Shown here one piece after another: positions 28,251-53,776 of a stretch of 64,000 nucleotides of DNA. This DNA is from Hyaloraphidium curvatum SAG 235-1. Taxonomy: Eukaryota; Fungi; Monoblepharomycota. Every line of letters begins with the position of its first letter. Position 1 is the first letter of the stretch. Where the stretch lies: assembly GCA_025558095.1 (NCBI GenBank), contig JAIVFI010000024.1, positions 310,001 to 374,000 on the forward strand, read 5' to 3'. The position numbers and the translations under genes were made by a program. The notes under the pieces were generated by a model that saw nothing but the letters and a program-made list of their open reading frames with translations, was not told the origin of the DNA and ran no database searches.

Positions 28251-28337
28251 AGATGTGCTGCGTGCTGCGGCGCCGCAACATATAGCCGCGGCGCGTCCCA
28301 ATGTTTACGCCGCACATCCTATACATAGCTCGGGGCG

Positions 28338-28907: not shown

Positions 28908-29051
28908 CGGTCGTGGGCGGCAGTCTTATTAGCATACGTAGGTGACCGTCCTGGGTGACAGACTGGACTGGCATTGGTGCTAGCTCGCGGGTTACATGCT
29001 CGGCGTATGTTGCGATCTGCTGGGAGGCGCTTCGAGGCGCTGGATCCTCAA

Positions 29052-30365: not shown

Positions 30366-30532
30366 GCTTTTCAGCGCGTGCAGCTGAAGGCCTTCGGGCC
30401 GCTGAAGCTGGCAGAACCCGTGAAGATTTGGCGGGGCTCGGGCCGGCAAAGTTTGGGCCCGCCATACGGAGTTTCGTCCCCAATGACCATGTACTGAAGC
30501 GGTGCAAAGCAAATCTACAACGAAACCTGACG

Positions 30533-33154
30533 TTACTGCTGCGGGTGCTTTCCCTGAACGACCATCAACTGGCCCGGCCCCAGCCCGTGCCCGATCAGCT
30601 CATCGCCCCACTGATCCAGAAGCCACTCGGACGTTCCGGGCGGAACCCCAGCGTCCGAGCCCGTGCGGTGCCGCAAAAAAGGAAGCCGCTTCCCACTGGA
30701 GCTTGCTCCGGGTTGAGCACCACCATACCGAGCGTTGCGGCCCAAAATGACGACGTCTCGCCGGGTCAGGCTCTCGATCTTTGGAACGAGCGCGGCGACA
30801 TTGGAAAAATCCTCCACGGTTGCTCCGCGCTGCGCGACTAGAAGAGAAATCGAGGCCTCATCATCCGCGCCGGCCTTGGCCTCCGTTTTGCGGACCCGCA
30901 AGATGAGCAACGCCGAGTCGCGATCCGACGCCAGCCTAGCGGCCACGGATGCCGCTTCCCTGTCGTCCAAGCCTCCGGCAAATACCAAGGCGATAGTCCT
31001 CCGTAGGGTAAGCTGGCCGCTCTGCGCATTGATGTCGGACCGCTTGACCGTAGCTGCTGTTCCCTGGCCACCGAGAGCAATCGAGCCATAGCCACGGTCG
31101 AGCGACACCAACCCCGGGCATGCGAAGCGGAGGGCTTCAAACACCTCGTCGCTGATGGTTTTGTTTCGCCTGAATTCGCTCGATGCGTCTGCGACGCTTC
31201 CCACGCTCGTCGAGTGGTCCAAACTCAGTACGACGAGGCCCACGTTCTTTTGCATTGCCTTGCCAGTGATTTCGGGCCCGTACGCGCCGTCCACAAACCC
31301 GAAGGATGCTTCGATGGGGATGCCGAGAAGGCTTGCAAAGCCGCCGAAGACGGCCAGAACGCCGTCACTCGCGATCGCGTTGTCTGAGTCCGCGAAATTG
31401 ACAGCAACCGAAACGGACGAGATGCGGTCGCTCAATTGCGACAGCCGGAGCGCATGAACAGTGGATCCGCTGCCGCGGGCCAGCGAGGCAGTCAACAGCA
31501 TGAGCCCGGGAAGCGTGCGCTCGTCGGTGAGGCACAGCAAGATGCTCTGGTTCGTGGAAAAGACAGCGCCCGGGATTGAGACTGCATCAACGGGTTCCAG
31601 GCCCTTGAATTGCTGTCGCAGCTCCAGACTTGGTGCCGCATCCTGCGTGCGCGAAGCACTGGAAGAATCCTCCGGCGCATGCAGTCCCAGGGCGTGCAAA
31701 TCAACTCCGTCGGCGTAAGTGTAGTACTTTGTGGGGTAAATGGCCATTATGATGGGAGCTCTGCGGATCGGCAGAGTCAATCCTCTGCAGTGGGCAGCTG
31801 TCACGGCGAGCTCACGTCATGAACGTCGTGACCAAAGCCATGATCACCATTATCGCAAAGATGGTTTCGTTGATGACACCCGCGGAAAGACCAACGTTGA
31901 GGACGATAAGCTCCACAAGCCCCTCTGGGTGGTTACTGGTGAGTGACTGCCAATCAACGGCGCCGAGGGAGACGCACTGGTGTTCATCAATATCCCGACC
32001 GCCCAGCTTTCGCGCCAGGTCAAACCCGAGAGTCGCGCCGCAAAGAGACAACCGAAGATCTTGCCAGCACAAGCGACGGCAATGACGAGGACGACATAAG
32101 CCCAAGCAAGAGCCGAGTTGAGCAAGCCAATGTTGGTGCGAATGCCACTGAGCGCAAAGTAAACGGGAAGGAAGATGAGCACAACAAAGTCCTCTATCTT
32201 CGCAGTCAGACGGAGTGCGAATCCGCTCTCGTGGGGCGTTGCGAGCCCCATAATGAAAGCCCCGAAGATGGCGTGCACGCCGATCATCTCTGTCATGAAG
32301 CTCGAGAAGATGACGAGAGCAAAGATGGCAAAGACGAGGGCCTCGTTGACCGCCGAGCCCGGTCCCTTTGTCTCGGCCCAGCGGACGGCCATGAGAAGCA
32401 GGGGCTTGAGCCCGAGAACAAGCAGGAGCGTCCATCCGACCGTGCAGAGGAAGGTATAGAGAGCGTAGAGGAGGTTTGAGGCTTGCGCAATTGCCACCGT
32501 CAGAGCAAGGAGGCACCAGGCCGTCGCATCGTCAACTGCTGCGGCCGAAATCACGGCCACGCCAACTTTGGTAGGGAAGAGCTTCCTCTCCGCCAGGATA
32601 CGAGCGAGAACGGGGAACGCAGTGATGGCCATCGCGACTCCGAGAAAGAGGAGGAAGCTGCCGAACGAGGGCACGTTTTGGGCCCCCGGAACGTCCATGT
32701 ACTGCCGGTAAAGAGCCCAACTGACGGCGGCACCCAGGGCAAATGGAACAATCATGCCCGCGATGCTCGTGCCCAGGGCTCGGCGGGCGTTCTTGCGGAG
32801 GACCGCGGGGTTCAGCTCGAGGCCAACCAAGAAAAGGTAGAAGCACAGGCCGAGCCCGGCAAAGGTCCTGAGCGATGGCAGAGACTGCGGAGGGAAAATC
32901 GTGGTGGTAAAGCCAGGAATGCGTCCGAGGGCCGAGGGGCCGAGCAAGATGCCCGACACCACCTCGGCGATGACCCGCGGCTGCTTGATGAACTGGAATC
33001 CCAGTCCGAGTGCCCGCGCCAGCAGGAGGATGATGAGGAGCTGCACGAGGAAGAGCGCGAAGGGCTGCTGTGTGGCGTCGATTGGAGAGGTCCCGTCCCA
33101 GACATTGCCCCGCGCAAAGAGCCTGCCGCCGGGGGGTTCCAGCGGGGAGGACAT
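30533..33154 (-). CDS. KHA1: CPA2-family K+/H+ antiporter (Kha1/CHX-like)
   Basis: [78 protein letters not shown]. Confidence 0.9.
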
Positions 33155-33593
33155 GGCGGAGCGTCCGCCCAAGGGCCGTTACAGCCTCTTCCCGCAGCCG
33201 TTTGCCGGGTCAACAGAACTTGGAGACCGAGCAGCAGCGCCTGCCGGGGTCAGAGGAGCTCGGAGATAGACTGCTAAACGGCGGACCGCCGGGCCCGAGA
33301 GTCCGGGTCCAACGCGGGCACCAGCCCTGCCGACTTGGCGTTGCGTATGCACATGCATCGTACGAATGCATGTAAAGTGCGAGCAATGAATAATTGTGGG
33401 GTATGAGGCCGGGTGAGCTGCGATTCGGGCTTCCGAGTCTCCGACGATTTTTCACTAGACGATGCGGATAGTCAGAGGGGGAACAGGGGGCTGGAGAACT
33501 TGACGGCAAACGCGATGGTGCGATCACCTGCGGAGCAAATCTGGTCTGCACGGCCGGGAGAGGTCCAGCTCAAATAAACGCTGCGTCTTTGCC

Positions 33594-34058
33594 ATGGGCG
33601 CCGGAGACCAGCACCACCACGAGGGTCCCGATGACACGCCGGAGCGGTGAGGACGCGCCGAAGTTGCGCATCCGACCGCGCTGACAATTCCGGACAGGTT
33701 CCCGGACCTGAAGTTCGTGGAGCCTGCTGAGCTCGCTGCGTGGCTCAAGAAGAAGGACGGCAAGCTGAGGGTGGTCGACGTTCGGGCAGACGAGTACTCC
33801 GAAAAGCACATCGTCGGGGCCGTCCACATCCCGAGCGACGAGATCCAGAACGATCCTTCACCGGCCGTTGAACAGCTGAAATCGGAGCAGACTCTCGTCT
33901 TCCACTGCGGTTTCAGCCGGAACAGGGGCCCGAAAGCGGCGAAAAAGGTTCGGGACGCTTTGAAGGCGGCGGGGATCAACGGACCCGAAATCTACGTTTT
34001 GAAGGGGGGCTGGGACGCGTTCGAAAAGCAGTTCGGCTCGGGAGAGCTCGTGGAATAA
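33594..34058 (+). CDS. Cdc25-like rhodanese-fold phosphatase / arsenate reductase (Ych1/Acr2 type)
   Basis: VVDVR..EY...HIVGA.HIPS and active-site VFHCGFSRNRGP, YVLKGGW. One intron after MGAGDQHHHEGPDDTPER. Confidence 0.85.
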
Positions 34059-34061
34059 CTA

Positions 34062-36290
34062 CTACTTGACATCGGTGCCGCCTTCGTCTGCATTCCCAAG
34101 AGCGGCTGCTGGGGATCCACCGCTTTCCCCGGCGGATACGTCTTCCTCCCGCTCTGGAGCCAGACCATTGCTCCGCCGTTCACGATACGGATGCTCATCT
34201 GCCGATCGCCGGCGTCTCGGCGTCGGCGTCGACTTCAGCAGCTCCTCGTGGCTGGCCGGAGGCCGATCAGTGAAAGACGTGCCAATGTCCGTCCCGCGGG
34301 GCGACACCAAGGGCGGTGCACCGTCCGCTTCCAACATAGTCCGAACGGTTCGCGGGTGCGTAACCTCGCCATCGAGCACCTCGCTCTTGACGCTGTTTGC
34401 GGGCGAGGTCCGCCCCTGTCCGCCGTTCACGAAGCTCACCGCCTCCGTTTCCCCAGGAGGAATGAGCAGAGAAGACTCGGACACATCGTGAGCCAATCCA
34501 GACGACGGCGCAAGCGCATCCGGCGCAGTTGCTCCCCGCTTCCGAACCAGGAAGGTGTCGGGCGTCATTGCCCGCCGGTCCGATGCCTGCAGCGCCGGGG
34601 AAATGCCGGTCGCTCCATACGCCCTCTTCTTGGTCGTCCTGACCAGGTACGGGCCCACAAGTGCCTGGATGCTCTTGAGCGACTTCCACGGTTTCCGCTT
34701 GGCGACCTGCCGGGTGTGGACGTCGACAAACTCGTCCGTCTCGTCGATGATCTCCTCCCCGATCAGCTCCTCCAGCACGTCCTCGAGCGTCACGATGCCA
34801 ATAATGTCGTCCGGGGGCGGTTGCAGACCCAAGTCGAGGCCCAGCGACGCTGAAGACTCCTGGGCCGAAACCACACGCGACGATCCCGAGCCGGACCTCG
34901 GTCGTGCCAGAAACGAGGGGTGCGGGGACTTTCCACCAGGAGCGAGGTCCGCAACGTTGTCTGCAACGAGAGCCATGTGACTGCGACCTTCTTGGAAAAG
35001 GTTCAAGGCGTCAAAGAGCTGTTTCAGAGACCAAGGAGCGTGAGCAAACCGCCGATGCAGATTCATCCACAGGACCCACGTTCGTATCGCCGGCAATGAT
35101 GGGCAAAAACATGAGCGGGAACTGCCGCACAGGACAGCAGTCGTGCGGGTCGTAGTCGATGAGGTTCTTGACCAGGAACATCGCCCGCACGTTCCTCTTG
35201 CTCCCCTCGTAAACCGGGATCCGCGAATGACCTTTCCTCCGGATCTCCCGGACCGCCTCGCGGTCGAGGATGCCGTCAATCGACAGCATGTAGACGTCTT
35301 CCATCGGCGTCATGACCTGGCGCACGGATTTGTTCGACAGGTCCAGCGTTGCACGAATGATGTTGACTTCGTCAGCCGAGAGCTCCCCGCCGCCGCGCCC
35401 GTCCTCGTGGAGGCCGATGAGGGCCTTGAGTTCGCCGCGCCGGTACACGGTCGCCCCTTTTTCGCCTTCGAGCGCCCAATCGAGTAGCTTCGACATGGGC
35501 CAGGCCAACGGGAAAAGGACAAACATCAGAAGGCGCACCAGAGGGGCGAAGAAGGCTGCGATGGGCAGTCCCCAGCGGTTGCAAACGGCTGACCGCGCAA
35601 ATAAGCATTCGCCAAAGTGGAGCAACAGGCCGGCTCGTACCGTTCGGGATGATTTCTCCGAAGCAGACGACTAGTGCGGTACTGATGAAGATGGCGAGGA
35701 AACCGCCCCCCAGGATGTCGTCGAGAAGGATCGGCAGCGATTCGTTGATGATGACGTTGGCGAGGAGGAGCGTGATGAGCAGCCAGTGCTCGTGCTTCCG
35801 TATTGGCGCGATCTTCGCCGCCCATTCGCGCTCCTGCTCAACGTCCGAGCGCTGCAGGACCTGCAGATTCAGCGGATCCAAAGTCATGAAAGCTGAGGAG
35901 TAGAAGAATGAGAACTGGGAACACGAACGCGCCGAACCTCCACCCCGGTCGGTCGACGGAAGGTACCCCATGGGCCTCCGTCCTTCCGCAACTCGAGCTC
36001 CCCATTCGGCATTGGGAAAACATACCAAGCGTCAGACCGGCCATGACACCGCCCGCGAGCACCAAGAACACCGAAAGCACGAGCCGCGTCCAGAACTGCG
36101 GCGACCCGAACTCGACCGAAGGCTGCGAGGGATCGCATTTCGGCAGCTTCGAGCCGCTGGCCGCGATTCCGTCCCCGGAGGAAGCGCCGCGGAACGCCAA
36201 GATCACGGCGGTGAGCACCGACACCGCGACCGGCAGGAGGGTGAGCCGGCGCAGGGCCACGATGCCGCCGATCCGGGTCGCGGGGTCCAT
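34062..36290 (-). CDS. CNNM/DUF21 + CBS-pair metal homeostasis protein (Mam3-like)
   Basis: LVLAGGVMAGLTL, HWLLITLLLAN, FGEIIP, VMTPMEDV, GHSRIPVY, FQEGRSHMA, GIVTLEDVLEELIGEEIIDETD. Confidence 0.92.
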
Positions 36291-36542
36291 CGCGAGGTCC
36301 TCTTTCCCGTGCCTCCCAGTCCGGAATCTGGCTTAGATGTCTCCCTCCGCGGAACCGCCGCAGGCGGAGGCGGTCTTCAGCCCCGCTGCCGGGCACCGGC
36401 GCGGCGTTATGTTTCAGGGTGGTTTCGATCAGTCCCCGCCCGGCGCCGCCGCCTCCCAGCACAGCGATGCGGAGCGGCAAAGCGCTTCGTCCCTTGCCGA
36501 CGATCTGAAGAACAAGATGCAAGATTGGAATGAATTCTTCTG

Positions 36543-38107: not shown

Positions 38108-38677
38108 ATGCGCCCCACTGCGATGCGTTTCCTGATCCTGGCGGTGGTTGCCACGGTGTGGGCCGCGGCCCCCGCGGCGGCGTGTTCCTGCCTGAGGCCG
38201 CCCCCTCCGCGCGAATCTCTCAAGCAGTCTTCCGCCGTTTTCCTCGGCAAAGTCACCGCCCTGCACGACACCGGCCCAGACGGATTCCGCCTGACCGTCG
38301 ACATGGACGTTTCGCGCATCTGGAAGGGCGTGGACTCGCAGGTCGTCAAGGTCATGACCACGTCCAACTCTGCCGCATGCGGCGTCAACTTCGAGAAGGG
38401 CACGCGGTACCTCGTCTACGCAAACGCGCAGGACGACGGCCTTTGGGCAAATTTGTGCTCGCGCACCGCGCGGGAGAAGGACGCAGCGGATGACTTGAAG
38501 GAACTTGGGCCAGGCGCCCCGCCGGCCGGCGCGAAGCTGTCTTCCGAGGCACCGGCGCCCGCCCCGCGGTACTGGATCGTCGCGGGCGGGCTCCTTGTTG
38601 CCGCGGCCGCGTTCTACGCAGGCGACGCGGGGCCGTTGGGAGCTTTCCGCGCACGGCGGGAGAAGGCGCAGGGATGA
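38108..38677 (+). CDS. Secreted/membrane-anchored TIMP/NTR-like protein, bacterial type, intronless
   Basis: Signal peptide ending AAA|CSC, AVFLGKV, WKG, AACG.NF..G.RYLVYA, NLCSRT, C-terminal TM helix. Confidence 0.75.
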   Translation: MRPTAMRFLILAVVATVWAAAPAAACSCLRPPPPRESLKQSSAVFLGKVTALHDTGPDGFRLTVDMDVSRIWKGVDSQVVKVMTTSNSAACGVNFEKGTRYLVYANAQDDGLWANLCSRTAREKDAADDLKELGPGAPPAGAKLSSEAPAPAPRYWIVAGGLLVAAAAFYAGDAGPLGAFRARREKAQG

Positions 38678-38834
38678 ACCCCGCCCCGGAAGCCTGTTTG
38701 GAGACCCGCCAGCATTCTGTAGATAGCACTGAGTTGTACCTATGTGACGTGACATATGCGCGCGCCCCGTCGTTGTAGCGTTGCCAACTCGACAGCGGTG
38801 AGGCCGATACTCGCAGGGCGATTCTCCGCCGTCG

Positions 38835-41267
38835 ATGCAACAACGCGTTTACGGGCCCGCCCGTGCGCTCTTCTCCCGACTCGGCCAGCAAAGCCGAAAG
38901 TTCCGTTCCAGCGCATTTGAGCGCGTTGGACCTCTCGTGCCCGCCCGCGCCCCCCTGCCCCGCTTCCGGGGTCTCGCCACGATGGCCGACGCGAACCCGT
39001 TCTTCACCGAATGGCGCACGCCGCACGCGATTCCGCCGTTCGAGGCCATCAGAGTCGAGCACTTCAAACCGGCATTCGACGCGGCCATCGCTGCCCAGCG
39101 CGATTCGATCGCCCAGATCCGCGCCGCGCACGCCGACCGTGCGCCGACCTTCGCCTCGCTGATGGTCCCGCTCGAGCGATCGGGCGCGCAGCTGCGGCGC
39201 GTCGAGGCCGTCTTCCACAACCTCGCGTCGGCGCACACGAACCCCGAGCTGCAGGCCGTGGAGCGCGATCTCGCGCCGCTGCTCGCCCGCCACGCAAACG
39301 CGGTCGCGATGGACGTCGGGCTGTTCAAACTGGTGGAAAAGCTGGACGCGGACATGAAGGCCGCGAGGGGCAACGCCGCCCCGCGCAATCCCGAGGAGAG
39401 GCTCGTGGACCGCTCCTTCCGCGGGTTCGTCCGCAGGGGCGCGCAGCTCAAGGAGGGAAGCAAGGAACGTGCCCGCTTCGCCGAAGCCACTGAGCGACTG
39501 GCCGCCCTGGCGGCCGACTTTGCTCAGAAGGTGCTTGCCGACGAGGGCGGATGGGAGCTCCGCCTCTCGTCGCCCGAGGAACTCGTAGGCCTCTCGCCCC
39601 CATTGCTCTCGGCCGCGCGCGCGGCAGCCACGGAGCGCGGCCTCGACACCGACCCCGCCGGTCGCCCGATCCACGTCATCACGCTCTCCCGCTCCTCGGT
39701 CGAGCCCTTCCTCGCGGCGTCGGACAACCGCGCCCTGCGCAAGAAGGCCTGCGACGCCTGGGCGCTCCGCGGGGCCAACGGCAACGCCAACGACACCCGC
39801 GAGACGGTGCGGGAGATGCTCCGGCTGCGCGCCGAGGTCGCGCACATCCTCGGCTTCGCGTCGTTCGCCGAGTTTGCGCTCGAGGACAGGATGGCGCGCA
39901 CCACGGGAGCCGTCGACTCGCTGCTCATGCAGTGCTGGCGCCCCGCGCTCGACAAGGCCAAGGACGAGGAGCGCGAGCTGCTCGACGTCGCGAGGCGGCT
40001 CGGCCACAACGACGTGCAGCGGATCGAGCCTCACGATTACCGATACTACGTCGGCAAGCTCCGCGCGCTGAGGTTCGACCTCGACGAGAGCGCTGTCAAG
40101 AGGTACTACAGCCTGGACAGGCTTGTTCAGGGGATGTTCTACGCGGCCGGCAGGCTGTACGGTCTCAAGATCAGCGAAACCACGGGCAAGTATCCTAGGT
40201 ACCACCCGCAACTCCGCACTTTCGAGGTCACCGACGCCACCACGGGCTCGCTCATCGGCGTCCTCATGTGCGACTTCTTCAGTCGTCAAAGCAAAAGAGG
40301 AGGGGCATGGATGAGCGAAGTAGGTGTCATCCGCAGCGCTGCCGTTCGCGTCTCATCGTAAATCATTCCCCCAGTACCGTGGGCAGAGCATGCTCGAGGG
40401 AGCGGACGAAAGGCCGATCGTGGTCAACGTGCTCAACTTCAACGCGCCGGCCAAGGAAGGCGAGCCGGTGCTGCTGTCTGCCGACGACAGCAGAACTCTT
40501 TTCCACGAAGTGAGTTGCTTTGAAGCGACATTGTCTGCCGGCCTGATCGTCCTCTCGTGCAGTTCGGACACGCTCTCCACGGCCTCCTGAGCCGCGTCGT
40601 CTACCCCAGCCAGTCGGGCACGAACGTCCTCAGCGACTTTGTCGAGCTCCCCTCGCAGATCAACGAGCGGTTCCTCGAGCCGCTGGCCAGGCTACCGGCC
40701 GAGGTCAACCCGTTCCGCGACGTCGAGACCGGTGCCGTCATTCCGGCCGAGCTGCTCGCGCGCATGGAGGAAGGCCGCACGTTCGGCGAGGGCTTTGCTA
40801 CCGTCGAGTTCCTCCTGTCGGCCCTGGTCGACATGGATGTTCACAGCATCCCCTACTCGGCGTACGCAAAAGGCGCCGCACCGGACCCATTCGCGGTGGA
40901 GCAAGCGACGATCGCCCGCCTCGGCGCGCCGGCGTCGATCCCGCCGCGGCACCGTCTCTCGCACTTCCTCCACCTGTTCGCTGACGGCTCTCCCGGCGCA
41001 ATGTACGCCTCGGGGTACTTCAACTACCTCTGGGCCGAGGTGCTGGAGTCGGACGCTTTCGGTGCCTTTGAGGAGGCGGCAGCGCGCGGCGGCGGCTCGG
41101 TGCTCGACCCGGCGGTGGGCGCCAAGTTCCGAAGGGAGGTGCTCGAGGTCGGCGGGAGCGTGGATCCGGCAGAGGCGTTCAGGAGGTTCAGAGGCAGGGA
41201 TCCGGTTGTGGAGCCGCTGCTGCGAAAGAGAGGTTTGCTGGGAAAGGAGGCGAGGGCGCACCTATGA
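38835..41267 (+). CDS. M3A metallopeptidase, peptidyl-dipeptidase Dcp-like, with N-terminal presequence
   Basis: NPFF..W.TP..IPPF..I..EHF.PAF, KRGGAWM, TLFHE|FGHALH (HExxH split by an intron), DFVELPSQ, YASGYFNYLWAEVL, FRGRDP. Second ATG at 38982. Confidence 0.9.
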
Positions 41268-41398: not shown

Positions 41399-43765
41399 GA
41401 GGCAAACAATCTTGTTTCTTCGAATTCGATGCGACCTCTTGCAGCTGGCCTATTCCGATCGGGCGCACGAGTGCTCCCTGCACTACCATTGACTGCGCAC
41501 GGAGATCTGGATCGGCCTCGGATTCCCCGCCGGGGAAGTGCAGCGGGAGCCGGGCCGCCGGATGGAGACCCCCTCTCCTCGACTTGCTGGCTACCCAGAG
41601 CCGGACGTTGCACCGCGGACGTGCTCTACTATAACGGGAGAGGCCAAAACATGGGAAACCATGCGTTCGCGTTATTTTTGGAGTTTCGCGTTTCCGGTTT
41701 CTGCTGGTTAGATCGGTCTTCGAGATTCGAAGTCAAGTCACCATCTGGCTACCACCGGCTCCCGCAACCTCCGGATTGGACGGAAATCGCGCCAAATGGA
41801 GGCAGATGCGACTGCAGCTTCTGGAGACACGTGATTTCGGCACTTTGGGCGTTCCGGCGCCGCGGCTGCTGCCCACCGGTGTCCGGGAGCCGGGGACACG
41901 TGGCAACGAATCCCGAGTGCCTCTGAAGCGGAACGCGTCTCTGGATGCTCAGAAGGCGCGGGAGTCCCGCGGATCCCTCGAGGGACCGCGAGGGGATCGG
42001 CGCACACGCGTTCCCGGCCCGCGCCGCGCCCAAACACCGCCGCCCTTGCCGGGCGACACCTTCGCACCCCTCCGGTGCCCGCCGACGCCCCTCCGGCCTC
42101 CCGGCGCCGCGATGCGTGCGTGCTGAGGGCGGGGGCCGGATTGCTGAGCACCAGCCTCCGTGTTTGTGGCTATATCAGCCGGCGGGCGCGCTGTGTTTGG
42201 CCACTGCAAACTTCACCCCAATCACGGTTGGGGCCGTTTGCCGTTCGCGCTTCGTACGCCGCCGCAACACCGCCGCGCACGAAGCATGCTGCTTCTCTGT
42301 CTCGCCGCCGGCGTCGCCGCCCGCCGCGCGCGCCGCGTGCCGTCGGGGCCCGTCCCCGCCGGTACCGGTGCCCGCCGCTGCGTGCCCGCCGCCGCCGCCG
42401 CCGCGCCCTCCCCCTCCGCCGCCGCACTCGTCCAACCGGGGCATTTACCGATCGGTGAGTTTCCCGGCGTGGATGGCCTTTCCTGGGGCGAGGCCATGGA
42501 TGCGGTCGCCGAGCACCTGCTCGTCGGCGCCGTCCACGGGACCGCCCCGCCGCCCCCCGCCCCCGCCGCCGCGCTGCTCGCAGCCAATGCGCCCGAGCGC
42601 GCCGCCCCGGCGACCGTCTCGTCCCCGCCGCCGCCGGCGCCGATGGTGGTCCCCGCCGCCGTCGACGCCCGGTTCCCTCGCCCCAACCAGCCCGTGCCCT
42701 TTGCGGAGCTGGCGGTGAGCCGGGAACTGGACCGCCGCGGCCGCGAGCTCTACCTGGAGTCGTACGACATGAACAACTACGGCCACCGCAGCACCTACCT
42801 GCAGCGGTGGCCGCCGCGCGTCGACCTCGACGACTACCACCTGGGCTGCACGGTCCCGGTTCAGCTTCCCTCCTTCGCCTCGCTTTCGGCGTGGAGCCAG
42901 GAAGGCAGGTGGGACACGGAGCTCTACTGGAAGGCGATCCAGAACGCCGTCAGGGTGGACGCATGTTCCCCCAACGCGCTCGCGGTGATCCCGCGGGGGC
43001 CCAAGGGCACGCCGCTCAGCGGGCCGGCGTTCCTGCTTCCGGATCCTTCCCCCGAGCGCGTCGACGAGCGGCCGGAGCCAGAACCGGAGCCGATCGCCGC
43101 GGCGGAGGCTCCGGCTGCCGAGCCGCCCAAGGACCTCGACGGCGACGTGCCCATGGTCGCGGAGGCTCCCGAGGGCGGCTTTGTTGAGGAGCAGGCCGCG
43201 GTCGACGTCGAGGCAGCGGCGGAGGAGGAGGTGGAGGCGCAGGAGATGGAGTTGGAGGTGCAGGAGGTGGAGCTGGAGGTGCAGCTCGAGGTGGTGGAGG
43301 TCGAGGCGGAGGAGGTGACGGTCGAGGAGGTCGAGGCGGAGGAGGTCAAGGCCGCCGACCCCCAGCCGCAGCCCGAGGAGTGGCACTACTCGCCGCTACC
43401 CGAGGTCGAGGAGTTGCCCGCGGTGGAGCCCGTGGCGGAGGACTTGGGTGCGAGCCCGATCTCGGACTCGCATCCACTCCGCGCGGACGTCCCGCAGGCG
43501 CCCGACCCCGAGGTCAAGCCGCGCATGTGGTACCGGAAGCTTTTCGACAGGCTGAAGCTGGGGCGGCGCGGCTCGAGGTAAGCAGGTAAGGAGAACGGCG
43601 GCGGATCTCCTGCTTCGGTCGCGCTGTCCGGGGACTGGCCACCCTCGGACCGTGCGTTCGGGACAAGGGGTGAAGCCGACGGACTCGAACGATACCCAGA
43701 CGCATCTGTACGATAGCAATGAATAGACATCTGATACCCGCAAAGACGCCCCATCCGAGTCCTGC
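41399..43765 (+). repeat. Left arm of a ~2.4-kb inverted repeat
   Basis: Reverse complement of 46686-~49045. Sharp inner junction (...ccatccgagtcctgc at 43765); coordinates sum to 90451 across the inner ~1.8 kb; outer edge diffuse. Confidence 0.95.
42286..43581 (+). CDS. Orphan Pro/Ala-rich and Glu/Val-rich protein, copy 1
   Basis: Long intronless ORF with GC3-rich codons (first ATG 42286, MLLLCLAAG), aromatic-rich central segment, EVE-rich tract, basic C-terminus. Confidence 0.65.
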   Translation: MLLLCLAAGVAARRARRVPSGPVPAGTGARRCVPAAAAAAPSPSAAALVQPGHLPIGEFPGVDGLSWGEAMDAVAEHLLVGAVHGTAPPPPAPAAALLAANAPERAAPATVSSPPPPAPMVVPAAVDARFPRPNQPVPFAELAVSRELDRRGRELYLESYDMNNYGHRSTYLQRWPPRVDLDDYHLGCTVPVQLPSFASLSAWSQEGRWDTELYWKAIQNAVRVDACSPNALAVIPRGPKGTPLSGPAFLLPDPSPERVDERPEPEPEPIAAAEAPAAEPPKDLDGDVPMVAEAPEGGFVEEQAAVDVEAAAEEEVEAQEMELEVQEVELEVQLEVVEVEAEEVTVEEVEAEEVKAADPQPQPEEWHYSPLPEVEELPAVEPVAEDLGASPISDSHPLRADVPQAPDPEVKPRMWYRKLFDRLKLGRRGSR

Positions 43766-43866
43766 AACGTGCCCAGATCTTGTGACAGCAAGACGACGTT
43801 TCTCATTCAATCAAACCTCGCAAAAACACATATCGATACCTGCGTACAACTAAGGCCTCCGCTACT

Positions 43867-46442
43867 CTAGAGCTTTGCTGAGCTCGCGGAAGTGGTCGAT
43901 CCGGCGTAGCTGGACCCGCTGGCGCCTTCCGTGGCAAACAGCTTCGGTGACTTCCTTGGCAGCCGGCCGAGGGCAACCTGACCAGAACCATGAATACGAG
44001 CTGAACGAGTCAGGGAATAGAGACACACCTCGGGCGGAACGGTGTCGCTGCCGAGGCCTGACACGGCGTTCCTGATCTCCGCGGGCACCTTGCAAGGGTC
44101 CGGCAAGCTGAAGTACCCCTGCGAACGCGTGTGAGATGGGAACGCCGCAGCAGAACAACGTGAGGAACGAACTAGCACGAAGTCGGCTTGCGAATAGCCG
44201 ATGAGTTCCTGCAGATCCTCTGGCAGGTCTTTCGCATACTCGGGGGGGCACGAGAGGTACTGGTTCTGCGGCTTCGGGTCAGAGAAACGCTCCGGCGGCC
44301 CAGATCTAGAGCGAACCTCCTCCTGCTTGAGCCAACCGAGACTGCAAATTGGAAAGTCAGCAACAGGATCCGGTAGAAGTCTGACCGCCACCCACGAGTA
44401 ATCGCAGTTCATGCCGATGCGAACTTCGTTGCTCCGGTTCGCACCTCCACTGTGAATGACCGAGCCCTGCAAGAAAGTTTCAGCCGAGTGCGTGCAGCAA
44501 TGAAGCAAGCGACCCACAGTGTAGATGAGTACGCTGCCCTTCTCCATTTCGGCGAACCCGATCTCCTCCGGCTTGGGCACGCGGTCGTACGACTCCCACG
44601 TGTTAGAGCCAGGGACCACACGCGTCGCCCCGTTCTCCCGGGTGAAGCGCGTCATGGCCCAGATGACGTTGAGCTCCGGCTCCATCTCCCTTGAGAGCCA
44701 GTTGCCCCAAACGTTCCGGTCGCGGTGAAGCTGCTGCGCTTTTTCTCCAGGACCGATCGCGATGAGCTGGGTCAGGTGCAGTTGCTACAAGGGTTCAAGT
44801 GAGCAAGCTTGCGACCAAGAACGAGACTCCACTCACGTATTTCTTGCAGCTCTTGAGGAGGACGCTGTCGCAGGCCTCGAGGACGCTCTTGTGCCTGACA
44901 AAGTCCCTCGCCGTCTTCGACCTCGCCACCAGCGCACCCGTTCGCTGCGTGCGGAAGCCCGAAAAGGAGTCGGCGCCGCCGGAAGTGCGGTTCAAGTACG
45001 GTCGACATTCGTCAAGAAGCTGGTCGACCATCTTGGGAGACATGGCGTTGGCGACGATCACGGCACCATCGCGGGCGAGGATTGCTGCGATCTCTGCCTT
45101 GGAAGCCGTCGGGCGCAAAGTAACGAGCTTGGCTTCCTTGCCTGGCTCCGGCTCGATGGCCTCAAAAGCGGCAAAGGCGCTGACAGTGGGTCGTGCCGCG
45201 GCAGAGGCGTTGTTCTGGCCCGCCAGGCTGTTGGGAGCGATCTTCTTGATGCGCCTGGGAGGGCGGCCGAGCGCGTACTCGGCTGGAAGAGCGTCCGTAA
45301 AGGTGCCGGTGAGGTTGGCCGACTTTGGCAGTAGAGGTGCCTTGTCCGGGTCGGGGAACGAGAAGTAGTTCTGAAAACCGAAGGGTTACGAACTTCCACC
45401 AAGCACCAAAGAGACACGAGAAACTTGCACATGTGTAATCTGTCATAGTATACGATATGAGCTGCAGGGACAGTGTCAGCGTGAGCGAAGTGAAGGGAAT
45501 GGGAAGCCGAGTCAGCGTGAGCTCCAAGGACAAGGTTCATAGTCATACCTCTTGCACTTCCGGACGAAGGTTCTTGGCGTATTCAGGAGGAACGCTCAGG
45601 AACTGAAGGTTTCGAGCGTAAGAGTGGACGGGTGACAGGAGAAAAGACAAACGGCCTGCCTGGTTCTCTTCCTGCCGAAGCCACGCCAACGAGTAGTCGA
45701 CATTGAACCCAATACGAGACATGTTGCTCTCGTTCTTGCCGCCCGAGTGAATCACGCTTCCGGTATCTGTCTCCAAGGTCACCGGAGCCAATGCAGCGCA
45801 CAAGAACCCCGATACTCACAGAACAGCACGCTGCCCTTGGGCATCTCCGCGTAGGCGATCTCCTCCTCTTTCGCTTCGCGGTCCCAGTCTTCCCACTTCT
45901 GACTTCCAGGAACCACCCTCGTGGCACCGTTCTCCTTCGTGAAGTCCGTCAGAGCCCACATCATGTTGAGCTCCGGCTCTAACCCGCGCAGGTACGACCC
46001 CCAGACCAGCCTGTCGCGGTGCAGGTATTGGGCTCCCTGACCGGGATTGATCTTGATGAGCTGCGTGAGGTGCAGCTGGAACCGCACGCAGTATGGCCCC
46101 AGGACTTGCTCGCAGGCCTCGAGCACGAGCGGGTGTGCGACAAAGTCGCTGGCGGCCTTGGTGCGGGAGAGGAGGGCGCCGATGCGCTGGGTCTGGAACC
46201 CGGAGAACTGTGCGGCCACGACAGTGAGTTCCTCGGCCAGTTTCAGGTAATCCTGCAAGAAAGCCGACCGAATTGGAGCCAGGCGCAGCGCTGTCGAGGT
46301 ACGGCGCCGACTCGGTGAGGAGCGTGTCGACCAGTGACTCGGGGACGAGCCGCGAGACGATGCAGGCTCCGTCACGCTCCAGCGCCGCGCACACGTCGGC
46401 AACCGACGCCGTGGCCGGCAGCGTCTGCAGCTTTGGTGCCAT
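43867..46442 (-). CDS. Tandem two-domain PhyH-family Fe(II)/2-oxoglutarate dioxygenase (single multi-exon gene)
   Basis: Both halves carry RDG.....,QLHLTQLI, LHRD, ENGATRVVPGS, HSGG.N....RIG, WL.QEENQ. Exon from 45370 runs in frame, with no stop and no ATG before domain 2 begins. Confidence 0.85.
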
Positions 46443-46685
46443 CTCGACGGAAGAAACGGCGCCGGTCGGCCTTCGTGGGATTCACGCGGGCGGCCTCTAT
46501 CTGCCTGGCTCAACGGCGGAACGGAGGCAACGGGCGGGAGACATCATCATTCACAATTTTCCGGCGAAGCCTCCATCCCGCTATGCAGGTGCCATTCGGC
46601 CATATATCTACTATAGAGTTGCTCGACAGATATGTTTTCCGGGAGTCCGAACGAATGCTTGGACTTTCGGGGGACCTGGACCTGC

Positions 46686-49045
46686 GCAGGACTCGGATGG
46701 GGCGTCTTTGCGGGTATCAGATGTCTATTCATTGCTATCGTACAGATGCGTCTGGGTATCGTTCGAGTCCGTCGGCTTCACCCCTTGTCCCGAACGCACG
46801 GTCCGGGGGTGGCCAGTCCCCGGACAGCGCGACCGAAGCAGGAGATCCGCCGCCGTTCTCCTTACCTGCTTACCTCGAGCCGCGCCGCCCCAGCTTCAGC
46901 CTGTCGAAAAGCTTCCGGTACCACATGCGCGGCTTGACCTCGGGCTCGGGCGCCTGTGGGGCGTCCGCGCGGAGTGGATGCGAGTCCGAGATCGGGCTCG
47001 CACCCAAGTCCTCCGCCACGGGCTCCACCGCGGGCAACTCCTCGACCTCGGGTAGCGGCGAGTAGTGCCACTCCTCGGGCTGCGGCTGGGGGTCGGCGGC
47101 CTTGACCTCCTCCGCCTCGACCTCCTCGACCGTCACCTCCTCCGCCTCGACCTCCACCACCTCGAGCTGCACCTCCAGCTCCACCTCCTGCACCTCCAAC
47201 TCCATCTCCTGCGCCTCCACCTCCTCCTCCGCCGCTGCCTCGACGTCGACCGCGGCCTGCTCCTCAATAAAGCCGCCCTCGGGAGCCTCCGCGACCATGG
47301 GCACGTCGCCGTCGAGGTCCTTGGGCGGCTCGGCAGCCGGAGCCTCCGCCGCGGCGATCGGCTCCGGTTCTGGCTCCGGCCGCTCGTCGACGCGCTCGGG
47401 GGAAGGATCCGGAAGCAGGAACGCCGGCCCGCTGAGCGGCGTGCCCTTGGGCCCCCGCGGGATCACCGCGAGCGCGTTGGGGGAACATGCGTCCACCCTG
47501 ACGGCGTTCTGGATCGCCTTCCAGTAGAGCTCCGTGTCCCACCTGCCTTCCTGGCTCCACGCCGAAAGCGAGGCGAAGGAGGGAAGCTGAACCGGGACCG
47601 TGCAGCCCAGGTGGTAGTCGTCGAGGTCGACGCGCGGCGGCCACCGCTGCAGGTAGGTGCTGCGGTGGCCGTAGTTGTTCATGTCGTACGACTCCAGGTA
47701 GAGCTCGCGGCCGCGGCGGTCCAGTTCCCGGCTCACCGCCAGCTCCGCAAAGGGCACGGGCTGGTTGGGGCGAGGGAACCGGGCGTCGACGGCGGCGGGG
47801 ACCACCATCGGCGCCGGCGGCGGCGGGGACGAGACGGTCGCCGGGGCGGCGCGCTCGGGCGCATTGGCTGCGAGCAGCGCGGCGGCGGGGGCGGGGGGCG
47901 GCGGGGCGGTCCCGTGGACGGCGCCGACGAGCAGGTGCTCGGCGACCGCATCCATGGCCTCGCCCCAGGAAAGGCCATCCACGCCGGGAAACTCACCGAT
48001 CGGTAAATGCCCCGGTTGGACGAGTGCGGCGGCGGAGGGGGAGGGCGCGGCGGCGGCGGCGGCGGGCACGCAGCGGCGGGCACCGGTACCGGCGGGGACG
48101 GGCCCCGACGGCACGCGGCGCGCGCGGCGGGCGGCGACGCCGGCGGCGAGACAGAGAAGCAGCATGCTTCGTGCGCGGCGGTGTTGCGGCGGCGTACGAA
48201 GCGCGAACGGCAAACGGCCCCAACCGTGATTGGGGTGAAGTTTGCAGTGGCCAAACACAGCGCGCCCGCCGGCTGATATAGCCACAAACACGGAGGCTGG
48301 TGCTCAGCAATCCGGCCCCCGCCCTCAGCACGCACGCATCGCGGCGCCGGGAGGCCGGAGGGGCGTCGGCGGGCACCGGAGGGGTGCGAAGGTGTCGCCC
48401 GGCAAGGGCGGCGGTGTTTGGGCGCGGCGCGGGCCGGGAACGCGTGTGCGCCGATCCCCTCGCGGTCCCTCGAGGGATCCGCGGGATTCCCACGCCTTCT
48501 GACCATCCAGAGACGCGTTCCGCTTCAGAGGCACCCGGGATTCGTTGCCACGTGTCCCCGGCTCCCCGGACACCGGTGGGCAGCAGCCGCGGCGCCGGAA
48601 CGCCCAAAGTGCCAAAATCACGTGTCTCCAAAAGCTGCAGTCGCATCTGCCTCCATTTGGTGCGCTTTCCATCCGATCCGGAGGTTGCGGGAGCGGGTGG
48701 TCGCACGATGTTGACTTGACTTCGAATCTCGAACACCGATCTAACGAGCAGAAACCGGAAACGCGAAACTCCAAAAATAACGCGAACGCATGGTTTCCCA
48801 TGTTTTGGCCTCTCCCGTTATGCTCGAGCACGTCCGCGGCGCAAGTTCCGGCTCGGGGTAGCCCTCAAGTCGAGGAGCAGGGGGTCTCCATCCGGCGGCC
48901 CGGTTCCCGCCGGACTTCCCCAGCGGGAATCCGAGGCCGATCCAGATCTCCGTGCGCCGTCAATGGCAGTGCAGGGAGCACTCGTGCGCCCGATCGGAAT
49001 AGGCCAGCGACGAGAGCTCGGAAGGAATTCGAGGCCGTTTGCCTC
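46686..49045 (-). repeat. Right arm of the inverted repeat
   Basis: Starts gcaggactcggatgggg at 46686; homology to the left arm fades around 49008-49045, ~60 bp upstream of the TOP3B ATG. Confidence 0.95.
46870..48165 (-). CDS. Orphan Pro/Ala-rich and Glu/Val-rich protein, copy 2
   Basis: Mirror of 42286-43581; three amino-acid differences (V/I, V/A, D/E). Confidence 0.65.
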   Translation of the reverse strand: MLLLCLAAGVAARRARRVPSGPVPAGTGARRCVPAAAAAAPSPSAAALVQPGHLPIGEFPGVDGLSWGEAMDAVAEHLLVGAVHGTAPPPPAPAAALLAANAPERAAPATVSSPPPPAPMVVPAAVDARFPRPNQPVPFAELAVSRELDRRGRELYLESYDMNNYGHRSTYLQRWPPRVDLDDYHLGCTVPVQLPSFASLSAWSQEGRWDTELYWKAIQNAVRVDACSPNALAVIPRGPKGTPLSGPAFLLPDPSPERVDERPEPEPEPIAAAEAPAAEPPKDLDGDVPMVAEAPEGGFIEEQAAVDVEAAAEEEVEAQEMELEVQEVELEVQLEVVEVEAEEVTVEEVEAEEVKAADPQPQPEEWHYSPLPEVEELPAVEPVAEDLGASPISDSHPLRADAPQAPEPEVKPRMWYRKLFDRLKLGRRGSR

Positions 49046-49108
49046 TTCCTTCGGCGATCTCGTTCCGACGCGATCACAAACAGTGCGTCGGTGCTGATCA
49101 ACTCCGCG

Positions 49109-52100
49109 ATGGACGGCCCGGGCGGACCTCCGCCCAGCAATGCTCCCCGCCAGCATCGTGGCCGTGGCGGGCGGGGCGGTGCGCGCGGGCGAGGCGCCCC
49201 GGGGGTCGACGCCGCGCGTCCTTCGCAGCCCGCGGCCGGCGCGTCTCCACCCGCTCGCGCCCACGACAGCCGCGGGGCCCGGGGCGGACGCGCGCGTGAG
49301 GACCGCGGCAACCACGGAGACGGCGGGAGTCGTGGTCGTGGAGACGGTGGACGCGGCGGACGCGGCGGACGTGGAGGCAGAGGAGCGCGATCGGGGCGCG
49401 GGAGAGGCGCTGGGCCGGGCAACGCGTCGGTGCCGGAGCACACCGCGGGAACCGTGGCCGGCAGCGCGGTGGACATTGGGGCCGGCACCCCTTTGGACGG
49501 GAGTGCGGCAGCGGCGCCGTTGCCTGCCGCGCCCACCGCTCCTTCCGCTCCTGCGCAACCGTCAGCGCCTTTCAGCAGCTTCGCGCTCGATCTGCTCGAG
49601 TCAATGCCGCGGTTGCCTCCCGGTCAGACTCTCCTTGGACACGCGGCCGCCGTGGCGCGCAGGGCGGGAGGGCCGCCGCTGAACGTTCTCATGGTAGCCG
49701 AGAAACCGAGCGTGGCAGAAGCCATTGCCGTTGCACTCAGCGGTGGCACACACTCCTCGGTCCGATCGGCGACCCCCGTTCACACCTTCCAATCTTCTTT
49801 CCTGGACCGACCCGCGACCGTGCACGTCACGGCCGTTGCTGGCCATCTATTCTCGGTCGACTTCCCCGCGGCCTTCAACAACTGGAACGTCGTCGATCCC
49901 CTGACCTTGTTCGAATGCCCGACGGAGCGCGTGGAACAGCGCCGCGGCGGGATCGCGAACCACATCAAGGAATCCGCGAAGGGCATGGACGCCCTGGTTC
50001 TCTGGCTCGACGGCGACAGGGAAGGGGAGAACATTGCTTTCCAAGTCTGGAAAGTCGCCCGTTCCGGTCTCAAGCAGTCCCGACTGGGCGCGTTTTCGGT
50101 CTTTCGTTCTCGCTTCAGCGCCTTGACGGCGCAAGAGATCCGCACCGCTTTCCGGACGCTGGAGCTGCCCAACCCGAACCTTGCCCTCGCCGTCGACGTC
50201 CGGCAAGAGATCGATCTGCGTATCGGCTGCGCCTTCACGCGCTTCCAGACCAAGTACTTCCAGGGTTCGACCGTGTGCCAAAGCATTCTTGATTCCCGTC
50301 TAACCGGTGCTTCCGCAGGAAGATACGGCAACCTCAACAGCGCCACCATCAGCTTCGGGCCATGCCAGACTCCGACCCTGGCCCTGTGCGTGCAGCGGCA
50401 TGATGAGATCCTTTCCTTTGTCTCCGAACCCTTCTGGACTCTTGTTGCCCGCGTCGACGCGGGACGGACCTTGATTGTGCGCGGCCGCCGGTTCGTCGAT
50501 GATCGGACAAAGGCGGACCGCTGCCTCGCTGCGCTCAAGGGCGTCCGCAAAGCCGTGATCACCTCGGTTGCCCCCAAGACGAAGAGCCTTCCTCCGCCCG
50601 CGGCGCTCGACACCGTGCGCATGCTTCAGCTTGCTTCGTCGCTGCTCCATCTGTCGCCCCAGGACGCGATGCGCGCGGCCGAGTCTCTGTACGTTTCCGG
50701 CTTCATCAGCTATCCACGCACGGAGACCAGCCGCTACCCCGCGTCATTCGACCTCGCCAGCACGCTCCGCGAGATCGCCAAGGGTGAGTACGAGCGCACG
50801 GCGCGATCCATCTTGGACTCTGCGCGGGGCAAGGTGGCCGCGCCCGACCGCGGCAAGGACAAGGGAGACCACCCTCCGATCACCCCCGTCCGATTTGCTG
50901 CCGAGGACGAGCTCTACGGCTCCGAACGGCGCGTGTACGACCTGGTCGTGCGCATGTTCCTGGGCAGCTTGATGGGACCATTGCGGTACGAACGGACTAC
51001 CGTCGTGGTGGATGCGGGCGGCGAGGAGCTGCGGGCTTCCGGGAGGCGCCTTGTGGACCGCGGCTGGGCGGCCGCGTGCCATTGGATCTGGAGCGAGGGC
51101 GGGAGGAACCAGGAGCACGACGTCGAGGGCGACGAGGGAGAGGTCGACGAGCTCGACGACGAAACGGAGGACGAGAGCGCGCTTCCGCCCGATCTCGCCG
51201 CAGGCAGAGAGTATGCGGTCGAATCCTTCTCGCTCCAGCAAGGCCAGACCAAGCCTCCGGGCTACCTGACGGAATCGCAGCTTCTGGGGGCCATGGAGCG
51301 GCGTGGAATTGGCACTGACGCTTCGATGAGCACGCACATTGCGAACATCGTGGACCGGAACTACGTCAGGGTCGGCGGAAACCGCCGCGAGGTGATCCCA
51401 ACCGAGCTTGGGATCGTCGTCATCCACGGATATGAGCGCATCGATCCGGATCTTGCGGCGACGACGCTGCGGAGCGCGATGGAGTCGGAGATCGGCAAGA
51501 TCGCGGACGGCGCGGTGCATTACACGCACGTGCTATCGGAGCAGCTGCGCCTCTACCGGGACAAGTTTCTCCGGTTCGTCGGCGGCATCGCCGGCATGGA
51601 CTCGCTATTCGAGGTTTCTTTCTCGTCGATCAACGACACCGGCAAGATCATGGGTCGCTGCGGGGCCTGCCGGCGGTATTTGAAGTGGTTGCCGCTGCGC
51701 CCGCAAAGGCTGCATTGTGCGACGTGCCAACGGACCTACGATTTGCCTCAGAACGGCGCGATAAAACTCTATCGGGAGCAGCAGTGTCCTCTCGTAAGTT
51801 TCCAACCCCGCGATGGATCGAGTGCTGGCTCACGCATTAGCTCTTTCCAAGGACGGGTTCGAGCTGGTCTACTTTTCAACAGGATCCACGGCACGCTCTT
51901 TTGTCTTGTGTCCGAAGTGCTACAACGAGCCGCCCGTCCCCGGCATCAAGGCGCCGATGCCATGCAGTCAGTGCACGATCGCCAAGTGCCCGCACTCTCT
52001 CGCCCGCACCGGCCTGTTCCCGTGCCCCAACGTTATCGGCGGTACCGGTTCGCGCGGCACCAGTGGGAGCAGCGGAGGCGTTGAAAGGCCGTGCGACGGC

Positions 52101-52580
52101 ACGGTGTGCTTGGATGGCACGAGCGCGCCGCGGTGGAAGCTGTCGTGCAACTCGAGCTCGTGCAATTTTGCGGCCATTTTCAGTGACTCGGTCCATGGCG
52201 TGGCCACTGTGGCCAGCGGAGTGCCGAGCATTGAGGAAGCGAATGCGGCCTCAGGTGTCTGCGAGACATGCGGAGCGGTGCTGATCAATATCAGGTTCGG
52301 CTCGAAAGCAGGCCGGGCGGACCTGGAATCGATTTGCGTCGTCTGCGACGAGGAGGACGTGGAAGGTGTGCTCGAGGCCAAGCTCGTGAGGATGGCGATG
52401 CTGCGGTCTCGAGGCCGGGGTCGAGGTCGTGGTCGGAGGGGACGTGGCAGAGGTCGAGGCGGTCACAGGAGGCAGGGGAGCGACGAAGGGCCGGCGTTCG
52501 CGGGCGCCGAGGGCAGGATGGTGCGGAAGGGAGACGGACCATCTCTCGGCGCATTCTTTGGGAAGCTGGACGGGTTCTAG
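49109..52580 (+). CDS. TOP3B: DNA/RNA topoisomerase III beta
   Basis: TOPRIM VLMVAEKPS, WLDGDREGENI, RQEIDLRIGCAFTRFQT, SFGPCQTPTL, catalytic ISYPRTET, GIGTDAS, C-terminal Cys zinc ribbons and RG tail. Confidence 0.93.
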
Positions 52581-52667
52581 CACAGTAGTCTAATCCACGA
52601 TCGTGTGATTTGACAGCGTCGAAGTAGAATTGATGGTCCGCCCGTCCCACCGGAATCGGTAAACAGA

Positions 52668-53776
52668 ATGCCCCGCAAATCCGCAGAGGCGACCGCTCCT
52701 GAGGTCGACGATGAAGAGGATATCTACGCCGTCTTTGGCGTCGAGAAGACGGCGTCTGCGGAGGACATAAAGAAGGCCTACCGCCGACTCGCTCTGAAGT
52801 GCGACCGGGTTCTCCGCGAGTCCTTCAAGCGCTATTCTGACAAATGGGCACCTGCCACCGGCAGACTGCATCCGGACAAGATTGCTGCGGAGGCCACCGA
52901 GGCTGAACGGGCCGAGCAGACGGCGCAGTTCCAACGGCTCGCCCTTTACTACGCGATCCTGACCGACGAGGCCAAGCGCGCTCGCTACGACGGTGGGCGA
53001 ATGGAATTTGACGGCTTAAACCACATTCTGACGCGGTCCGTCTTTCTGCAGCCACCGGCTCGGTTTCCGAGGCATCCTCGTCGATCCTCGACGGCCTGGC
53101 GGCCTCGGGGAAGGAATGGGACGCCTACTTCAGCGAGCTCTATTCGGGCATTGTTTCCGCGGAAAAGATCGACGAGTTTGCCGCACAGTACCGGAGTTCC
53201 GACGAGGAGCGGGCAGATCTCAAGGCGTGCTACGAAGAGTTCGAGGGAGACATGGACGCCATCATGGTCAGTTCCGCAGCAGATCTGTTGCAATCATTCA
53301 TGAGGAGCTGACATTTGATTCGCATCATTCAGGAGTCCATGATCTTGGCCGATATCGAGAACGAGCCCCGCCTCCGAGCAATCATCGAGACGATGCTGGC
53401 AACCGGGGAGCTCAAATCGACGCCCGCGTGGAAAAAGACCACGTCGAAAGCGGCCGTAAAGAAGCGCATAAAGGAGGCTCAATCAGAGGCCAAGGAAGCC
53501 GAGGAACTCGCGAAGGAGCTGGGCATACACGAGAAGCTCGGCAAAGGCGGCTCGAAGGAGAACGGGGAGGACGCTCTGCGCGCTCTGATGCTCGCCAACT
53601 CGCAAAGGAGGATGGACTCGCTCATCCAGAGCATCGAAGCAAAGTATGCCCCCCCTGCGAAGGGCAAGGCTGGGAAGGGCGGGAAGGCAAAGAGAGGCAA
53701 GGAGCCCGAAGAAGAGGACTGGGTGTCGGAAGAAGAGGAACCGGCGCCAAAGAAGACGAAAGCTAAGGCGAGGTGA
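52668..53776 (+). CDS. DNAJC9: DnaJ/Hsp40 protein, DNAJC9-like
   Basis: J-domain IKKAYRRLALK|LHPDK; W..YF..LY, EFA..YR.S.EE..DL; C-terminal EAKEAEELAKELG...MDSLIQSIEAKY. Confidence 0.85.

Follow-up and report, generated by a model that had tools for sequence, protein, structure and literature searches.

Structure and Gene Content of the Locus

Within the 64,000-nucleotide stretch of DNA from the water fungus Hyaloraphidium curvatum analysed here (the window) lies a 7.6-kb locus (41399-49045) in which two 2.35-kb inverted arms enclose a 2,920-bp spacer. Its features and its two neighbours, in window positions, are as follows.

38835-41267, plus strand: M3 peptidase (Dcp-like), left neighbour; its own neighbours differ in comparison with two relatives
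41399-43765, plus strand: left arm (self-comparison and RNA contigs); outer edge next to where the Dcp RNA contig ends (41397)
41399-41964: left arm, outer stratum (diverged), non-coding and transcribed; 92.3% identical to the right arm
41821-41876, minus strand: GT-AG intron (RNA joint) of a transcript pointing outward from the left arm; transcript spliced, apparently non-coding
41965-43765: left arm, inner stratum (apparently homogenised); 99.7% identical to the right arm (5 differences in 1,800)
42286-43581, plus strand: left copy of the orphan gene X; 431 aa when read from the first in-frame ATG; covered by RNA contigs
43867-46442, minus strand: spacer gene with two PhyH-type 2OG-Fe(II) dioxygenase domains; 648 aa, 12 exons, 11 RNA-supported introns
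46681-46690: perfect 10-bp palindrome with its centre exactly at the right inner junction (sequence scan)
46686-49045, minus strand: right arm (self-comparison and contigs); outer edge ~64 bp before the start codon of Top3B
46870-48165, minus strand: right copy of the orphan gene X; protein differs from that of the left copy at 3 amino acids
48576-48634, plus strand: intron (RNA joint with right-arm letters) of a transcript pointing outward from the right arm; acceptor lies 3 nt beyond its left-arm counterpart
49109-52580, plus strand: topoisomerase III beta (Top3B), right neighbour; inverted relative to DnaJC9 in comparison with one relative

Self-comparison confirmed the layout described in an earlier note, with inverted arms of ~2.4 kb at 41399-43765 and 46686-49045 around the spacer and a full, inward-pointing orphan ORF in each arm, both intact; its further claim, that the spacer holds a single gene, agrees with the RNA-contig joints, which define 11 canonical introns and restore one 648-aa frame. 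The ungapped match between the arms covers 1881 nt (41885-43765/46686-48566), and homology extends outward to ~41420/49032 and, via a short match past an 8-bp indel, to ~41399/49045. The palindrome at the right inner junction is possibly a fold-back scar; such palindromes occur at 0.17% of window positions, and this one was spotted post hoc.

The X protein consists of an Ala/Pro-rich start, a ~140-aa core and a Glu-rich tail; a shorter model (P0001) gives 312 aa with a start at ~42643. A word search matched X only, and Pfam, NCBIfam, Atlas and a metagenome scan gave no match. The full HMMER matches, two repeat proteins with 19-24 residues aligned, were judged spurious, and a single-sequence AlphaFold prediction (pLDDT 38) was unusable. 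The earlier note had proposed a genome-wide search for X in similar palindromes; this yielded only two full copies, both at the locus, and elsewhere just a relict 0.3 kb of the 3' end of the gene, 147 kb away (C24:502 kb) and 82% identical. This third piece had gone unmentioned before.

Both halves of the spacer gene match the PhyH family (PF05721) over the cut-off and retain the HxD...H triad, and the two domains are 59% identical to each other. The spliced model was built from window coordinates for the frame check and the comparison of the halves; database searches used ORFs or exons. The two PhyH ORFs might have been tandem paralogues, a possibility ruled out by the RNA joints, and a PhyH pair on contig C39, tested as a recent duplicate, is not recent. 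The RNA contig of the spacer gene ends at 46526, which gives the gene a 5' region of its own.

RNA contigs also cover the X ORF region, and the transcript leaving the right arm runs towards Top3B. The open frame at 48545-49108 was considered as an N-terminal extension of Top3B and ruled out, as a relative's protein matches from the ATG at 49109. Hairpin dsRNA, which had been raised as a product of the repeat, finds no support in the form of read-through RNA: no RNA contig spans the right inner junction, a contig gap that is not proof. A search of Rfam gave no match.

Support from Short Reads and RNA

Near-identical arms within a long-contig assembly invite the suspicion of an assembly or polishing artefact, a refuting condition already named in the earlier note. 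The assembly and the short-read run may share their source strain. The arm has a depth of 15 in the Illumina contigs, the spacer and flank one of 8-9. These contigs contain the two outer-arm alleles and span the right outer junction as well as the two inner ones, at which they reach just ~30 letters into the arm. The inner stratum is collapsed into one contig of double depth, so that the identity of the inner arms is seen in reads, beyond the assembly alone. Arm-specific splice acceptors are carried by RNA as well. An artefact is refuted by these short-read and RNA contigs, single positions such as 43183/47268 excepted, and we regard it as extremely unlikely.

Two Levels of Identity between the Arms

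The arms fall into two identity strata, absent from the earlier description, of ~0.55 kb (outer) and 1.8 kb (inner), and the high identity of the inner one includes non-coding sites. The outer stratum has 42 differences in 547 columns (41420-41964), and identity changes at 41965/48486 (Fisher p 4e-22). The arms do not differ (100% identity) over the 531 bp upstream of the ATG at 42496, of which 321 bp precede the first in-frame ATG. The two X copies have four coding differences, three of them non-synonymous; polarised with the relic as outgroup, the inner differences include two derived ones in each arm. RIP-like mutation as the source of the arm differences was ruled out (20 transitions, 24 transversions).

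At near-neutral inner sites, two differences are observed where 76 would be expected at the outer rate, and selection at the protein level alone therefore cannot account for the identity of the arms. This bears out the earlier proposal of a recombination-maintained locus. The strata suggest that the arms are an older duplication later overwritten by recent arm-to-arm copying, although a second, recent duplication of the inner part alone would formally give the same result; conversion is read here from the strata in one strain rather than from a species tree of the arms. The asymmetry of the strata, perfect to the inner edge and diverged over the outer 0.55 kb, is not accounted for by symmetric edge erosion.

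A Lineage-Specific Synteny Break

The relative whose Top3B is 71% identical is collinear with the window at 15-37.7 kb and 49.7-64 kb, micro-inversions included, and there Top3B and DnaJC9 lie head-to-head across ~80 bp. In two relatives a TLC gene comes directly after Dcp; its orthologue in H. curvatum sits on another contig (C17). The relatives compared are distant, and in their Dcp and Top3B loci no similarity to the arms or to X and no inverted repeat was found, nor was X or an orthologue of the PhyH gene located. The Top3B locus of Gonapodya has no synteny with H. curvatum. The inverted repeat thus sits at a lineage-specific synteny break. We also considered whether Dcp once lay at the site of the relic (C24:502 kb) and ruled this out, as the adjacent TLC gene is a paralogue (36%) and the orthologue is on C17.

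Origin of the Repeat

We think it likely that a lineage-specific inverted duplication arose at a breakpoint, diverged and was recently homogenised in its inner part. The expressed orphan X, with a bidirectional promoter, would have been duplicated in inverted orientation at the rearrangement, either by a small inversion in which one break was staggered, flipping the PhyH gene and leaving X on both sides, or by inverted insertion of a copy of the X region. The arms would then have drifted apart to ~8%, until recent non-allelic copying from arm to arm, by gene conversion or template switching, overwrote the inner 1.8 kb; the five differences, spread over both arms, would have arisen since. If such copying involved a crossover, the spacer could be passively inverted, nearly silently, and rare inversion of this kind is plausible.

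Alternatively, selection on X, whether for dosage or through a Centroid-like essential or selfish role, could keep the duplication, with old, recurrent homogenisation and a passive re-inversion polymorphism. Both ORFs are intact and RNA covers the ORF region, the older, 82%-identical relic points to earlier copying of X, and Centroid genes, too, evolve fast, are restricted to a lineage and form part of a homogenised inverted repeat (PMC9731477). However, conversion by itself keeps both copies intact, the repeat is missing at the syntenic sites of relatives, whereas that of FF is kept across a genus, and no X homologue was found anywhere searched; we consider this reading unlikely. More doubtful still is that the locus inverts appreciably or under regulation, with X Centroid-like in being essential or selfish, as part of a genome-wide set of self-homogenising invertible cassettes diversifying this early-diverging fungus. 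The rearrangement is real but of a familiar kind.

The recent exchange between near-identical ~2-kb arms, which resemble the 2-kb inverted repeat of Ogataea polymorpha (PMC5720833), also recalls a regulated flip/flop as in methylotrophic yeasts, in which induced recombination between arms inverts the PhyH gene and alters its expression. The earlier note had inferred a possibly orientation-switching locus, with mating-type switching as one precedent, but there are no two alternative cassettes or alleles: the 648-aa gene fills the spacer. As this gene is complete, with its own 5' region, and has 1.8 kb of near-identical arm on each side, a flip leaves its nearby context unchanged, and a regulated genetic switch is therefore unlikely. 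No silencer is evident; the flanks are gene-dense, both arms give spliced RNA and the left flank, with Dcp, is RNA-covered (contigs only). No tyrosine recombinase was found in the genome. Yeast mating-type switching requires none. The yeast-style switch is, taken together, very unlikely.

A Foldback/Pack-MULE-like transposon with giant TIRs carrying the PhyH gene, or a mobile X itself, would fit the inverted ends, the dispersed 0.3-kb relic and the relocated neighbours; it is largely refuted and highly improbable, because, in line with the earlier note's view that the locus is no classical transposon, neither the whole unit nor either arm has a TSD (only a chance 6-mer was found), there are just two full copies of X, which has no family match in Pfam or NCBIfam, and the arms consist of gene plus promoter, unlike element ends. 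Extremely unlikely, too, is an inverted-repeat centromere of the Komagataella type, with 2-kb arms and a small core: the dimensions are similar (PMC5010909) and the locus is near the middle of a 682-kb contig, but K. phaffii centromeres are transcription cold spots, whereas here arms and core carry spliced or coding RNA, the core is an expressed 12-exon gene, and the GC of both (58-74%) matches the rest of the window.

Comparison with Known Systems

The mating switch of O. polymorpha shares with H. curvatum the ~2-kb inverted repeats around an invertible-looking segment (PMC5720833), but H. curvatum has no alternative cassettes, no evident adjacent silencing domain and no known inducer, and a flip would be nearly silent. 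The ORF-bearing long inverted repeats of Candida albicans are likewise multi-kb, >99% identical and a few kb apart; they have been shown to mediate CNV, LOH and inversions (PMC6591007), whereas no such event was observed for the H. curvatum repeat. The staggered-break inversion duplicates of Drosophila are also inverted, non-repetitive gene copies flanking a segment at a synteny break (PMC1885836). The H. curvatum arms are near the ~1.9 kb maximum reported for them and the outer identity near the reported 88% +/- 5%, but most of the Drosophila duplicates decay (PMC1885836), whereas the inner part of the H. curvatum repeat appears to have been re-homogenised.

The closest precedent is the FF/Centroid repeat of Saccharomyces, where kilobase inverted repeats of lineage-restricted genes are homogenised by non-allelic conversion and inversion is expected just as a by-product (PMC9731477). 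As there, H. curvatum has kilobase inverted arms with intact paralogous genes and an identity above the reach of selection. FF has 4.2-kb arms and a 24-kb spacer of 15 genes, is near a centromere, is kept across the genus and has been shown in both orientations (PMC9731477); the H. curvatum repeat has 2.35-kb arms, a one-gene spacer, only its inner part homogenised and no sequence relation to FF, and is missing at the syntenic sites of two relatives. Its two strata and five marker differences make the orientation of the spacer directly testable by long reads. On its own, the locus offers a clean case of apparent concerted evolution acting on inverted gene copies in a fungus other than the yeasts. 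If similar gene-bearing repeats are frequent in the genome, local duplication in inverted orientation, with subsequent conversion or decay, may be one of the main ways in which gene duplicates and micro-inversions arise in the lineage.

Inverted Repeat and Read Support

A repeat finder recovered the core of the two arms across a 2,920-nt gap, with more inverted segments lying outward of it to ~41420/49032, and alignment over an 8-bp indel pushed the edge of homology to ~41399/49045.

Arm core and RNA-supported features of the outer arms
41885-43765 and 46686-48566, inverted: arm core pair (repeat finder, 2,920-nt gap)
41821-41876: intron of the left outward transcript (RNA joint)
48576-48634: intron of the right outward transcript (RNA joint; acceptor shifted by 3 nt)

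The inverted repeat is real and well supported. In this genome of 55 contigs and 31.9 Mb, the two arms described in the earlier note are recovered by short-read contigs: depth is 15.1 in the arm versus 8-9 in the spacer and flank, right-arm alleles are carried all along the outer arm, the right flank is matched by a loose contig end, and both inner junctions are spanned (by ~30 letters). The two DNA runs, X1 and X3, come from a single sample, possibly of the assembly's own strain, and hence check the assembly rather than other isolates. The note had seen neither a target-site duplication nor a recombinase; a search for the former at the repeat found none, and no tyrosine recombinase was found. 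Elsewhere in the window, a 50-bp repeat occurs three times in tandem (8571-8720; 86-90% identical).

Genes of the Arms and Spacer

The orphan ORF X is intact in both arms (431 aa counted from the first in-frame ATG), and RNA contigs cover it. X matches no family, and word search, full HMMER search, Atlas and metagenome contigs gave no homologue. The genome-wide search for further copies that the note had proposed yielded only the two full copies and one relic. This relic of the 3' end (~300 bp, 82% identical) lies on the same contig 147 kb away (G000:C24:502206-502472; L008:1355-1623 in the fetched stretch), upstream of a TLC-domain gene. On both sides the outer arm parts also give spliced RNA pointing outward, with no sizeable ORF common to the left and right transcripts. 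Each arm thus combines a gene with a bidirectional promoter region, and both arms are active.

At first appearance the spacer holds two PhyH genes, a reading rejected on a single RNA contig that joins both. Its joints define 11 GT/GC-AG introns and one 648-aa frame (46442 to 43867), agreeing with the claim of exactly one gene; an independent metatranscriptome, from a biofilm, shows four of the same splice joints. The protein has two domains, 59% identical, each with HxD...H. PhyH is a large and much expanded family in this genome (59 matches, ~50 loci), and the cargo is therefore not special. Some PhyH loci are present twice on small contigs (C50, C48, C54), possibly haplotigs.

Two Strata and Probable Copying between Arms

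Arm identity changes abruptly at 41965/48486 (Fisher p = 4e-22), from 92.3% in the outer stratum (41420-41964; 42 differences in 547 columns) to 99.7% in the inner (41965-43764; five in 1,800). Inner upstream, synonymous and 3' sites show two differences where ~76 are expected, with the 210 bp that separate the two candidate start codons counted as non-coding; the 321 bp lying upstream of both candidates are likewise 100% identical. Of the four coding differences between the X copies, three change an amino acid. Such a pattern can arise from recent copying between the arms but not from purifying selection. Two differences are derived in each arm when the relic serves as outgroup. The inner arm collapsed into one double-depth Illumina contig, so its identity is present in the reads. 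The note's proposal of a recombination-maintained locus is supported. At 43183/47268 the right-arm allele is absent from the contig difference list and may stem from an error in the assembly or from bubble collapse.

Identity is perfect as far as the inner edge and falls off outward. Such a pattern would fit copying initiated at the inner edge, for instance by fold-back template switching; ordinary conversion tracts may explain the homogenisation as well.

Synteny Break and Origin

A relative picked up through Top3B (topoisomerase III beta; 71% identical) is microsyntenic with the window at 15-37.7 kb and 49.7-64 kb apart from several small inversions; window 26800-36300 differs from its contig (L046/L047) by several single- and few-gene micro-inversions. 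There, Top3B and DnaJC9 stand head-to-head with ~80 bp between them, whereas in H. curvatum Top3B is inverted relative to DnaJC9 (49045-52668). The two halves of this intergenic stretch are each represented by a short motif kept beside each gene here (each p ~0.05); on this basis the breakpoint would be no more than ~20 bp from the outer end of the right arm. The former 80-bp bidirectional promoter seems to have been divided, and Top3B may now use the outward transcript of the right arm, with its five upstream ATGs.

In two relatives, a TLC gene and a prenylcysteine lyase gene come immediately after the peptidase gene Dcp; their H. curvatum orthologues are on other contigs. The fetched loci of both relatives contain neither X-like sequence nor an inverted repeat. 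The Top3B/DnaJC9 inversion, the displaced Dcp neighbours and these absences mark the block that runs from the TIMP-like gene through the right arm as a lineage-specific assembly at a synteny break. The Dcp-like M3 peptidase has, after the two relatives, bacterial next-best matches (e.g., Microvirga, 46-50% identity); the TIMP-like ORF adjoins it, and the pair (38108-41267) falls within the non-syntenic block.

A 10-bp palindrome is centred exactly on the right inner junction (0.17% of positions; post hoc), and a 6-bp hairpin lies within the left outer edge (also post hoc). A staggered-break inversion in which these two junctions are new would fit both hints; the right arm may instead have arisen by simple inverted insertion.

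Orientation Switching and Hairpin RNA

Because the spacer holds a single complete gene and is flanked on both sides by 1.8 kb of nearly identical sequence, inversion would leave the PhyH promoter and 3' context unchanged. The switch of Ogataea polymorpha depends on inversion exposing one of its two MAT loci to repression by the centromere (PMC5720833); nothing like this is evident here. The suggested mating-type-style switch is not supported, and regulated or frequent flipping has a small probability.

Read-through into a hairpin dsRNA, also suggested, needs RNA over both inner junctions, and RNA contigs cross the left one only. The simplest reading of this RNA is a PhyH 3' UTR that continues into the arm on the putative antisense strand, with a short natural antisense overlap as a possible result. 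The genome has Argonaute and RdRP genes. Two Argonaute/Piwi loci on contig C17 (G000:C17:196959-197677, minus; 210684-211795, plus) lie 13 kb apart in opposite orientation, possibly a second local inverted duplication.

Comparison with Known Systems

The H. curvatum repeat belongs to an already known kind of structure. Among precedents the nearest is the FF region of Saccharomyces, where gene-bearing inverted repeats are homogenised by conversion, re-inversion is passive and orientation is stable on laboratory timescales (PMC9731477). Further precedents are the inverted duplications at inversion breakpoints (PMC1885836) and the inverted repeats with ORFs of Candida albicans (PMC6591007).
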